This document shows, piece after piece, positions 27,001 to 29,934 of a DNA stretch of 64,000 nt. This DNA is from Camelus ferus (taxonomy: Eukaryota). The position numbers were made by a program, and so were the translations under genes. Positions within the stretch are counted from its first letter, which is position 1; each line of letters opens with the position of its first letter. The DNA lies in contig NC_045706.1 in NCBI RefSeq assembly GCF_009834535.1, positions 15,376,001-15,440,000 of the forward strand. Reading direction: 5' to 3'. The notes below the pieces were generated by a model that did no database searches, was not told the origin of the DNA, and saw nothing but the letters and a program-made list of their open reading frames with translations.

Positions 27001-28142
27001 ACTCCACCCATCCTACTTCACAGCCACATCCTCCTCTAATCCATCCTGCCTCTAACCCACTTCATGGCTTTCAGTCACGCCATCCTTTTCTGCTGAGATG
27101 TGTTCTCTTTTCCAATCTCTTTTAAAATCCTACACATCCTTTAAGGGTCCAGCTCAAATGCCTTCTCCATAAAACCTCTCTGGATTCCCACAAATCTGTG
27201 TATTCTTTTTTTCTTCAGACCCTACAGCATTTTTCACTTATTTCATGATTCTTATCGTAGCCTGATTGCTTACTTATTTTAACTTCCCAATATGGCTACT
27301 CGAATGTGTCTATCTTAATTTCCTAATGATATTATAAGTTCATTGAGAGGGATGTCTCTTACTAACCTGTATATTCTCTGCAAAATGACGCAGAGTGACT
27401 TACTAATGATAGGTGCTTTGAATAAATATTCAAAATATTTATTTTTGAATTGAATTGGATCGCTTGATTTCTAAGTTATTTCATCCTAAACTTGGTGCTT
27501 CTGACCAGTCACCTACAGTGAGGAATGTGAACATGAAGTTAGGACATCTGTATGATACCCCTTGACCTATCCCCACAACAAACCCTGATAACAATTTAGG
27601 TCATTTAACCAAGTGAGAATTTCATATAAAATTAAGGAAGTATTCTCCAGTCCTTTCCCATCTATAGTTTGCTGTTAGTACCATCTCCAAGCAACAAATG
27701 GAACATTTGGTCCATGAAAATCAGAAAATGCCAAATTTCTAGATAAGTGAGCTCTTACAAAATAATTCATTGAATCTAATAGCCTCTGCTACGTTCGCCA
27801 CACCAAGAATCATTGTCCCAGAATGCCACCCATTATCCTTACTAAAACCATCTTATGTGTCCTGGTTCGTTTGATGGGAATTGATCATTATTTTCAATAG
27901 AAAGTTTTTTCCTTTCTTAAAGTATGCCCCCTGGCTGGTGGGGGAGGGTATAGCTCAAGTGGTAGAGCACATGCTTAGCATGCACAAGGTTCTTAGGTTC
28001 AATCCCCAGTACCTCCTCTAAAGGTAAACAAGTCTAATTACCTCCCATCTTCCAAAATTAAAAAAAAAATACAATAATAAATAAATTTTTTAAAAAAGTA
28101 TGCTCCCTGGGTACCTGGACTCTTCTGAGGTTTGGCTTCCAT
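8898..28142 (-). CDS. PLEKHS1: Pleckstrin homology domain-containing family S member 1, complete spliced CDS (12 coding exons, 1407 nt, 468 aa)
   Basis: Join of 28142-28115, 21813-21725, 21611-21505, 21174-21040, 19719-19644, 18751-18635, 16836-16711, 14603-14500, 13997-13791, 13101-13000, 11762-11627, 9077-8898. Every intron is GT-AG, phases are compatible and there is no internal stop. The protein starts [32 protein letters not shown], has the PH-domain motif SWKKRIFIL and ends [15 protein letters not shown]. It closely matches my recollection of human PLEKHS1/C10orf81 and sits downstream of CASP7 as in human. Confidence 0.95.
10290..10460 (+). mobile_element. L2 3'-end fragment
   Basis: ctgtaagctccttaagctcaagg...ccccagcacaccacagatgttcaacaaatggtgagtgagtgagtgaatg. 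Confidence 0.6.
10985..11330. mobile_element. Tandem MIR fragments
   Basis: Two MIR cores: ctgagatgaggaaacggaggc and ttatcctcatccccagtttaacagaagagaaaattgac. Confidence 0.65.
11627..11762 (-). CDS. PLEKHS1: PLEKHS1 coding exon 11 ([45 protein letters not shown])
   Basis: tttgcag acceptor, GAG|gtgagt donor, 136 nt. Visible inside ORF-track entry 11549..11989. Confidence 0.95.
13000..13101 (-). CDS. PLEKHS1: PLEKHS1 coding exon 10 ([34 protein letters not shown])
   Basis: cttgtag acceptor, TG|gtaggt donor, 102 nt. Confidence 0.94.
13791..13997 (-). CDS. PLEKHS1: PLEKHS1 coding exon 9 ([17 protein letters not shown]...[19 protein letters not shown])
   Basis: cctctag acceptor, AA|gtaaag donor, 207 nt. 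Possible internal in-frame donor at 13833/13832. Confidence 0.9.
14500..14603 (-). CDS. PLEKHS1: PLEKHS1 coding exon 8 ([35 protein letters not shown])
   Basis: tctgtag acceptor, TG|gtaagt donor, 104 nt. Carries a YxxM motif. Confidence 0.93.
16380..16700 (+). mobile_element. L2 fragment
   Basis: aaatgtcatctccatggaaccttccctgg...cccagcctagtgccttaggaacagtgcctg...aataaatgatgaatggatgg. Confidence 0.6.
16711..16836 (-). CDS. PLEKHS1: PLEKHS1 coding exon 7 ([12 protein letters not shown]...[13 protein letters not shown])
   Basis: Long pyrimidine tract ending ttcttcag acceptor, GAG|gtaacc donor, 126 nt. Confidence 0.93.
18167..18207. repeat. Perfect (AC)20 microsatellite
   Basis: Uninterrupted AC repeat; candidate polymorphic marker. 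Confidence 0.95.
18635..18751 (-). CDS. PLEKHS1: PLEKHS1 coding exon 6 ([39 protein letters not shown])
   Basis: aagcag acceptor, ATG|gtaatc donor, 117 nt. Confidence 0.9.
19644..19719 (-). CDS. PLEKHS1: PLEKHS1 coding exon 5 ([25 protein letters not shown]), C-terminal PH helix
   Basis: caacag acceptor, GAG|gtgact donor, 76 nt. Contains the conserved PH-domain Trp. Confidence 0.94.
20450..20885 (+). mobile_element. MLT1 (MaLR) solo LTR
   Basis: tgttatgggttgacttgtgtcccc...gtcagaatgtgaccttatttgga...attgttatggcagccctagaagatgaaca. Confidence 0.85.
21040..21174 (-). CDS. PLEKHS1: PLEKHS1 coding exon 4 ([45 protein letters not shown])
   Basis: tacaag acceptor, AG|gtaagt donor, 135 nt. Confidence 0.94.
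21505..21611 (-). CDS. PLEKHS1: PLEKHS1 coding exon 3 ([36 protein letters not shown])
   Basis: tttttcag acceptor, CG|gtgcgt donor, 107 nt. PH-domain WKKR motif. Confidence 0.95.
21725..21813 (-). CDS. PLEKHS1: PLEKHS1 coding exon 2 ([30 protein letters not shown])
   Basis: cattag acceptor, GCG|gtgagt donor, 89 nt. Visible inside ORF-track entry 21668..21976. Confidence 0.95.
23156..23311. other. Assembly gap (156 N)
   Basis: Run of n inside L1. Confidence 0.98.
23518..23673. other. Assembly gap (156 N)
   Basis: Run of n inside L1. Confidence 0.98.
25480..26850 (+). mobile_element. Ancient L1M 5'/ORF1 remnants joined to an L1ME-like 3' end
   Basis: agtccctgaagtgggggaggagacagaaaaaatatttgaggaaataatgctgaaaattttacag (ORF1-like). 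aaatgttcacagcagctttgtgtgtaatggccaaagactggaagcaacccagatg (3' end-like). Confidence 0.65.
26860..27430 (+). mobile_element. L2 fragment
   Basis: aaatctgatgacactgctcctgtgctcaaagtgcttcaaggg...ggtgctttgaataaatatt. Confidence 0.55.
27940..28097 (+). mobile_element. Full-length Vic-1-like SINE with 16-bp TSD
   Basis: ggggagggtatagctcaagtggtagagcacatgcttagcatgcacaaggttcttaggttcaatccccagtacctcc plus tail. TSD aaagtatgccccctgg (27919-27934) and aaagtatgctccctgg (28095-28110). Confidence 0.93.
28115..28142 (-). CDS. PLEKHS1: PLEKHS1 first coding exon ([10 protein letters not shown]); full exon 28161-28115 includes 19 nt of 5' UTR
   Basis: ATG at 28142-28140. Acceptor ttttgacag at 28162 with branch-point-like actaat about 27 nt upstream. 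Donor CAG|gtaccc. Confidence 0.92.
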
Positions 28143-29934
28143 TAAGGCTGTCTGTTCTCACCTGTCAAAAAGAAGGGCGAAGCATTAGTCCTCAGACAAC
28201 AGGATGCTTCACTGATTAGCCACTCAGTTACCAAGGATCAGGATGGTGCTCCCAAATGTTGGCGAGGTGGGTTATCAGCTCCCCCCTTCCCATCTGCCCC
28301 TGAGGCTGATAGTAGCCATGGTAACGAGGACCTATCCAAGCAGCCTGTGCTCACCAAGTGGCAGTTCCAAGGAGGTGTTGCCAGGATGACTGAAGGAGCC
28401 ATCTTCCCTGGCCTTTCTCTGCTCCTGCTTCATAAGTGGTTCTGACAAGAGAGCCCTCGGGGACAGCAACACCAAGGAGGAGAGACAAGAACAGGGCAGA
28501 GGGCAGGATGCTACCCACCAGCTGCAGCTGAGAAAGCATTTCTGGCCAAAAGGAGGCCCAAGATAAGCCCTTCTCCATGCCAGGAACTCACTTTCTCCAG
28601 AGGGAACCCTGAGTGCCAGGGCCAGGGCATATCTCTGTTCTTAAGTTGCCTCAGCCACTTGAGTGACCTGTTTCCAAGGCTACCCAACCCTGGGGGGGGG
28701 GGCTGAGGCTGAAACTGACACAATGAAACTGACTCTAGAGGTGGAGCCCTTTCCTGGACAGATCTGCTGGCGATCCCATGACCGACACAGGGGCCCTGCA
28801 AGAAGAGGAATCCCACGGGATAGAAGGCCACAGGGTCGATGATATCTTTGAAACAAAAATGTGTTGGTGGCTAGTTTTTACCTTGAATTAGTAACACTCT
28901 CAAAATAGGAGGAAGCAGTGAACGGAGCAGTCCCAGGGCAGTCCCAGTAAATGGGAGGAGGCAAAGGGCCCTCCACCATCCAATTGGCATGAGGTCATGC
29001 CTTCTGTCTCCTGAGTTCTCCCTTTCTCCAGTATAAAGTCATTCATTCCTCCTAAGGTATGAATGACTCACAGCCATTCTTTATAAATATAGATATAGTA
29101 TCTATGTATAGACATAGATATGTAGTATACGGAGATGAAAGTCTTAAGGTTAAGACCACCTTGGTGAAAGCACTGGGCCACTGAGGCCAAAATCCCCTGT
29201 TCCCAGGAAGAGGGAAGAGCATTTCTGCACAAGGATGAGGAATGTATCCTATTTAAAATTTTGCCCCCACCCCCTGCAAAAAAAAAAAAGGATGTTTAAA
29301 AAAAATTTACCCCTGAGGTTTTGCTTCAAATCCATGAGGTTCTTTCTAATTTCAGGGATTTCATTGCCTGAAGCAGAACTGGGGGCCAGTGGTTTTCAGC
29401 CCCCTGCCTTACTCTTCATCTATGCACGTGGGACTTGGCCATCTTTCCCAAAGGGCATTTAGCCTAGTGAGCTATGGAGTTCAAAGATCAGATCAAAGAC
29501 TGTGCAGGACAGACTAGCTGAGGGTAATATATTTTAAAGCAGTGTGTTTCCTGCAAGCTCTTTGTTAAAAAGCCAAAAATCAATTTTCTTGATAAAATAA
29601 TTATCTGTTAAGATTTTACACTTTGTAAAATGTGTTTGGTTACATGATTTGTAACCAAATTTGGTGTCTCAGGGCTGTCCCCCGTGAGAAAACTCCATTT
29701 GAGAGAGGAAGAGGAGACTTGGGCTGGGCCCCACAGGGTCCCCCACATCGCCCCACACAACAATGACACCCACGCTCCCTGTGCACTGTGGATGGCTAAG
29801 AGAACTTTGGAAGACATTTCCGGCTTCCCAATGTCTGGGAAAGGCCCCAAAATTCTGTTTAGGAAACACTCTTCCCACTTTTTTTTATGTTTTTGCTTTT
29901 TTTTTTTTTTTAACCCATTGTAAAATGAGATGAC

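Follow-up and report, generated by a model that had tools for sequence, protein, structure and literature searches.

A putative, conserved recursive-splicing exon carrying the start codon of PLEKHS1 in Camelus ferus

Splice sites of the form AG|GURAG can serve as acceptor or as donor and are known as dual-specificity splice sites. Putative recursive-splicing exons (RS-exons) were defined by Blazquez et al. 2018 (Mol Cell, PMC6224609) as exons whose re-created donor has a MaxEnt score exceeding the threshold of the species (5.52 for human). Such exons account for 1.7-4.9% of all exons in human, most of them constitutive. Their re-splicing is repressed by the exon junction complex (EJC), 26.8% of them respond to knockdown of eIF4A3, and the EJC-sensitive ones have a strong 3' splice site and a weak 5' splice site of their own (PMC6224609). 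Criteria of the class also include prior removal of the upstream intron, and skipping that depends on an intact GT and increases upon depletion of EIF4A3, RBM8A, MAGOH, RNPS1 or PNN. Here we analyzed a candidate of this kind, the start-codon exon (exon 2) of PLEKHS1, in a stretch of 64,000 nucleotides (nt) of Camelus ferus (contig NC_045706.1, positions 15,376,001 to 15,440,000), which is called the window. PLEKHS1 is an adaptor which binds phosphatidylinositol-3,4,5-trisphosphate (PIP3) and phosphatidylinositol-3,4-bisphosphate (PI(3,4)P2) and drives phosphoinositide 3-kinase (PI3K) in PTEN-null prostate. Its PH domain is required for membrane recruitment, and the isolated mouse PH domain, residues 10-134, binds both lipids (bioRxiv 10.1101/2023.05.18.541123). 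The analysis indicates that exon 2 is a real and normally included AUG exon and, on balance, a conserved putative annotated RS-exon, in which re-splicing would probably be minor or conditional.

Full-length PLEKHS1 tblastn with splice-aware reconstruction recovered 12 coding exons spanning 28142 to 8898. The reconstructed translation was identical, with zero mismatches, to P0159 (PLEKHS1 of Camelus ferus/C. bactrianus, 469 amino acids (aa)), and the window therefore holds Camelus PLEKHS1. Read directly from the window, the minus strand at the AUG exon is gactaatgcttcgcccttctttttgacag|GTGAGAACAGACAGCCTTAATGGAAGCCAAACCTCAGAAGAGTCCAG|gtacccaggg. Both this sequence and the gene model agree with the 47-nt exon of the original prediction, which opens at AG|GTGAGA, contains the ATG and ends at CCAG|gtaccc. 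The coding content of exon 2 is MEAKPQKSP and the first base of Gly10. The predicted start of exon 3 was recovered by the reconstruction, and the next in-frame methionine is M89 in exon 5, as had been proposed. The PH domain lies by Pfam at about residues 36-134, and a protein starting at M89 gives no Pfam PH match.

AG|GTGAGA is the acceptor of exon 2 in three assembled cDNAs, from a Pteropus-like bat (L007), a rodent (L010) and the hedgehog Erinaceus (L011). In addition, the RefSeq proteins of Perognathus and Thomomys translate across the junction (..FP|VRTA..). Internal AG acceptors at +10 and +14, named in the original prediction as a finding that would speak against it, were rejected. In each of the three cDNAs the upstream exon is followed directly by GTGAGA, and neither AG is therefore the acceptor in these three species.

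Exon 2 is preceded by two different first exons (Table 1). The 3' end of the distal exon 1a (...GGCTTCCG|gtaagt at 30996) was placed by alignment to Perognathus exon 1; this is the upstream exon ending in CCG which the original prediction had assumed. It is supported by the 5' untranslated regions (UTRs) of the rodent and hedgehog cDNAs, with the junctions ...GACCG|GTGAGAAGAG and ...TTTCCA|GTGAGAGCAG, respectively, and is separated from exon 2 by an intron of 2834 nt. The bat cDNA has the junction ...CTGCCACTTG|GTGAGAACAGATAGC..ATG; its 5'UTR has no match to 1a and maps to the proximal exon 1b, with an equivalent position in six other genomes. Exon 1b is a previously unreported first exon of PLEKHS1, and both its block and its donor are kept throughout the nine genomes examined, Elephas and Perognathus among them. 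The 3' splice site of exon 2 is strong, with a pyrimidine tract and, about 23 nt before the exon, a conserved CTAAY branch point, and the block GGACTAAC/ACTAAC together with the CAG acceptor is kept in nine genomes. The 1b donor GTGAGCACAG and the exon 2 start GTGAGAACAG agree at 9 of 10 bases, so that splicing of 1b to exon 2 regenerates practically the same donor (TTG|GTGAGAACAG). Over a longer comparison, GTGAGCACAGGCTGC of the 1b donor region and GTGAGAACAGACAGC of the exon 2 start, 12 of 15 bases are equal.

Donor strength was estimated by two proxies, an approximate position weight matrix (PWM) and the energy of the duplex formed with the U1 5' end, calculated with ViennaRNA. The own donor of exon 2, CAG|GTACCC, has 0.06 bits, the lowest PWM value of the 13 donors of the gene, and -7.1 kcal/mol; the predicted weakness of this donor was thus confirmed. 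As GTGAGA follows directly on the acceptor, joining of 1a or 1b re-creates a usable 5' splice site, situated 47 nt upstream of the own donor. The junction after 1a, CCG|GTGAGA, reaches 4.33 bits and -8.3 kcal/mol, and that after 1b, TTG|GTGAGA, reaches 3.06 bits and -8.1 kcal/mol, which equals the authentic 1b donor differing only at +6. Unspliced CAG|GTGAGA has 6.82 bits and -11.1 kcal/mol, and the exon 1a donor 6.34 bits and -10.7 kcal/mol. The re-created donor matches 5-6 of 9 consensus positions and is in the middle range of the 13 donors. By these proxies it is moderate, better than the own donor of exon 2 and on par with the used 1b donor. GTGAGA had been described as near-consensus, becoming a strong donor once re-created; its advantage over the own donor stands, but the description as near-consensus overstates the re-created site. 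Neither scores nor activity values of the exact 9-mers were found in the literature.

The first six bases of the exon were compared in 12 mammalian taxa, as the original prediction had proposed for AG|GTGAG. GTGAG was retained in 10 of them, across placental superorders, and lost in Carnivora. GTGAGA is present in Camelus, Capra, Orcinus, Diceros, the Pteropus-like bat, Erinaceus, Elephas, Perognathus and a second rodent, and GTGAGG in Molossus. The seal Halichoerus has ATGAGA and the lion Panthera AGGAGA. On the basis of this distribution, GTGAG is ancestral in placentals and was lost once, in the Carnivora, which retain both gene and exon. Column conservation, calculated as identity to camel over nine genomes, was 0.93 in GTGAG, 0.96 in exon nt 6-10 (AACAG), 0.77 in the remaining 5'UTR, 0.93 in the coding part of exon 2 and 0.96 in the donor GTACCC, compared with 0.71-0.79 in the upstream intron and 0.44 in the distal downstream intron. 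These identities place the non-coding first 10 nt of the exon and the non-consensus CCC of the donor under constraint, and the constraint is not confined to the GT dinucleotide. AGGTRAG occurs 21 times over both strands of the window, so that its mere occurrence carries little weight; what chance does not explain is that it sits precisely at a real acceptor and persists in 10 of the 12 mammals sampled. A conserved RNA structure around exon 2 was rejected, as RNAalifold on nine species gave no more than -4.5 kcal/mol and its covariation term was positive.

All 27 full-length proteins derived from Logan/ENA cDNAs, most of them from bats and the others from rodent, hedgehog and rabbit, begin with the exon 2 methionine, as do 115 of 160 protein models. 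No cDNA lacking exon 2 was found in six transcript-derived clusters, which include four pteropodid bats. A start at M89 (MQ.VQKMF) is annotated for RefSeq dromedary isoforms X1 (P0166, 381 aa) and X2 (366 aa) and for every Dipodomys model. These models are indirect evidence for some omission of exon 2, which may be plain skipping, use of other promoters or a matter of annotation choices. A modelled camel mRNA composed of 1a and exons 3 to 13 contains three short upstream open reading frames (uORFs) followed by exactly the 381-aa frame starting at M89. A modelled camel 1b transcript without exon 2 has an in-frame ATG (28433) and would encode a protein of 486 aa with the entire PH domain, and loss of the AUG exon is therefore not always loss of the PH domain. 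The original prediction, that re-splicing would leave a PH-truncated or untranslated product, agrees with the M89 product lacking a PH match and with the annotated dromedary isoforms, but does not extend to the camel 1b transcript. Reads across an exon 1-exon 3 junction cannot separate re-splicing from ordinary skipping.

Many annotated isoforms bypass exon 2, either by joining other 5' exons to exon 3 or by starting within intron 2. Camelus ferus X2-X5 (MLFSILNH..) belong to the latter; they read from intron 2 into exon 3 and keep the PH domain. The corresponding open frame in intron 2 (21814-21937, minus strand) is continuous with exon 3 (..|KQFTF) and is annotated as these isoforms. Comparable N-termini derived from the intron (..QFFSEIYEEQTEF..LLLGKQ) also occur among the annotations for New World monkeys, rabbit, mouse lemur and a bat, so that a conserved alternative promoter or first exon may lie shortly before exon 3.

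Table 1. Coordinates of PLEKHS1 features around the AUG exon in the window
Feature	Position	Strand	Remarks
Distal first exon 1a	30996..31200	-	Non-coding in camel; 3' end 30996 firm, 5' limit approximate
Proximal first exon 1b	28355..28452	-	3' end ...CTGCCACTTG at 28355; 5' limit is the bat cDNA end only
1b donor TTG|GTGAGCACAG	28354..28345	-	
1b-exon 2 intron, 193 nt	28162..28354	-	
Branch-point-like CTAAT	28188..28184	-	
Pyrimidine tract	28181..28167	-	
Acceptor AG of exon 2	28163..28162	-	...ttttgacag|
Exon 2 (47-nt AUG exon)	28161..28115	-	From sequence and gene model; begins at GTGAGA in cDNAs L007, L010 and L011
Donor-like GTGAGA of exon 2	28161..28156	-	
In-frame TGA of exon 2	28160..28158	-	
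Start codon ATG of exon 2	28142..28140	-	
Own donor of exon 2, CAG|GTACCC	28109..28114	-	GT at 28114; weak; near-invariant across mammals
tRNA-Ala-derived SINE	27935..28094	+	Camel-lineage; antisense to PLEKHS1; about 20 nt past the exon 2 donor
Exon 3, 89 nt	21725..21813	-	Starts 21813; acceptor common to either exon 2 donor
Met89 codon, exon 5	21132..21134	-	First in-frame AUG when a 1a transcript lacks exon 2

The short interspersed element (SINE) listed in Table 1 has a tRNA-like part at 27944..28018 on the plus strand, detected by ARAGORN. Its target-site duplication of 16 nt (28110..28095 and 27934..27919) overlaps positions +5 and +6 of the exon 2 donor, and the element is missing from all eight other mammalian genomes compared. 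In the pre-mRNA it yields a tract of 69% U at intron +18..+62. U-rich tracts beside weak donors are known enhancers of the TIA1 type. The SINE could alter the use of exon 2 in camelids.

Several smaller features were observed around the start codon. At position -3 (window 28145, minus strand) camel has T (ccttaATGg), whereas seven of the other eight genomes have A and Perognathus has a deletion there; the camel T thus weakens the Kozak context in a lineage-specific manner. Camel exon 1b contains two upstream ATGs (28431-28433 and 28400-28402, minus strand), neither of which is kept in all species. The first shares the frame of the main open reading frame only when exon 2 is absent, giving the protein of 486 aa. 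The second, in strong context (gggaagATGg), opens a uORF of 39 codons which overlaps the main start if exon 2 is present. The in-frame 1b ATG was rejected as a conserved alternative start, being missing in Capra, Diceros, Halichoerus and bats and frame-shifted in Orcinus. In the seal (L008 5982), the change of the first exon base from G to A makes ATGAGA, and thereby an out-of-frame upstream ATG opens exon 2. In the lion (L001 12738), a later change of T to G gives AGGAGA and eliminates this ATG. The window contains four runs of N, at 23156-23311 (156 nt), 23518-23673 (156 nt), 40747-41055 (309 nt) and 54648-54833 (186 nt), and two of these fall within PLEKHS1 intron 2.

If exon 2 is a normally included RS-exon, the upstream intron, of 193 nt or 2834 nt, would be removed first, and the EJC deposited on the first exon would mask the re-created donor. 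The weak donor GTACCC would then be used, with retention of exon 2 in the mRNA. Messages without the normal AUG would come from a minor or conditional event, either re-splicing or plain skipping of exon 2, which is short and weakly defined. A capacity for re-splicing is mechanistically plausible as judged from the sequence. Some points weigh against this reading. The RNA evidence comes from assembled cDNAs of other mammals. The strength values are proxies, the PWM being approximate, whereas the cut-off of the class is a MaxEntScan score of 5.52 (human). In Carnivora the GT is gone and the exon is kept without visible compensating change. Retention of GTGAG may also reflect a preference for G/T after acceptors, or a 5'UTR, exonic-enhancer or promoter-proximal signal. 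In another explanation, the donor-like start GTGAGAACAG is unrelated to re-splicing and is conserved as acceptor context or as a 5'UTR or transcriptional element, the AUG-less mRNAs arising only by ordinary skipping of a 47-nt exon that has a weak donor or by other promoters. AACAG, which is outside the core donor, is conserved as well as GTGAG, and the region comprising 1b, the intron and exon 2 is 82% conserved among Laurasiatheria, as expected near a promoter. Carnivores altered precisely the G and the T and kept the exon, and the many isoforms avoiding exon 2 through other 5' exons or intron 2 starts fit this explanation as well. However, the re-created site equals the used 1b donor and outscores the own donor, and its non-use is hard to explain unless it is masked. 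This explanation is considered a less probable alternative.

The original prediction went further than a normally included RS-exon and proposed a possible built-in switch for removal of the AUG. In this reading the re-created donor is an evolved, regulated switch, by which the AUG exon is re-spliced out, when EJC repression is relaxed or depending on the first exon, to give an untranslated or M89 PH-truncated product and so to tune the PI3K adaptor. Conservation of the motif and of the weak donor over about 100 million years, the M89 starts of dromedary X1/X2 and all Dipodomys models with a product devoid of Pfam PH, the unequal junctions of the two first exons (4.33 vs 3.06 bits) and the nearly exact regeneration of the 1b donor are in its favor. 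A cDNA without exon 2 was nevertheless seen in 0 of 27 full-length assembled transcripts, Carnivora have an intact gene without the GT, and the M89 models may instead stem from plain skipping, alternative promoters or choices made during annotation. Moreover, only 26.8% of RS-exons responded to eIF4A3 knockdown in Blazquez et al. (PMC6224609), and PLEKHS1 is not named in that paper or its supplements. Such a switch over the PH domain is unlikely; with exon 2 kept in all 27 full-length cDNA-derived proteins and the GT lost in Carnivora, this part of the original prediction was not supported. A broader version is more improbable still. In it the choice of first exon and the re-created donor form a conserved two-way 5' switch: re-splicing after 1a removes the only AUG and leaves a non-productive or PH-less mRNA, and after 1b the donor is regenerated nearly base for base, so that exon 2 acts as a true recursive exon. 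Carnivores would have lost this control, and the camel SINE, 20 nt past the weak donor, would have shifted the balance, hence the AUG-less isoforms of dromedary. Least probable of all is a dual-specificity use, in which 1b transcripts keeping the 193-nt intron splice from unspliced CAG|GTGAGA to exon 3 with no recursion, and the body of the AUG exon is dropped. This site has the AG|GTRAG form and is the third strongest donor-like site in the gene (6.82 bits, -11.1 kcal/mol), but no cDNA or protein model of that structure was seen, and efficient removal is to be expected of an intron so short, with its good branch point and pyrimidine tract. A normally included exon with the anatomy of an RS-exon remains the preferred reading.

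If re-splicing of the AUG exon is true and regulated, it would provide a post-transcriptional on/off control of the PLEKHS1 adaptor. A start codon would then also be a clear target of recursive splicing; no literature combining recursive splicing with start codons was found. In comparison with the described systems, PLEKHS1 exon 2 shares with dual-specificity sites the motif and its strength as a donor when unspliced, and differs from them in that only acceptor use is documented for the site. Like the intronic recursive sites and Drosophila ratchet points of Sibley et al. 2015 and Duff et al. 2015, as cited in PMC6224609, it has AG and GT juxtaposed (AG|GT). As at the intronic sites described there, the donor is regenerated, almost exactly (TTG|GTGAGC to TTG|GTGAGA), and rivals the downstream donor. 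Those intronic sites, according to the same account, belong to cryptic exons which are normally removed and lie in very long introns, whereas PLEKHS1 exon 2 encodes the N-terminus and its upstream introns are of 193 and 2834 nt. It is not an intronic ratchet point, as it is present in mature mRNA and its upstream introns are short. Like the annotated RS-exons of PMC6224609, it is annotated and included, and it starts with GT after the acceptor so that the junction re-creates a 5' splice site. At the sequence level it also resembles the EJC-sensitive RS-exons in its strong 3' splice site and weak own 5' splice site. Unlike annotated RS-exons, it carries the start codon and follows first exons. 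By anatomy, PLEKHS1 exon 2 fits the annotated RS-exon class as a putative member; the locus offers no new mechanism and represents a well-conserved, easily tested case of a common class, for which the carnivores, having lost the motif, provide a natural control.

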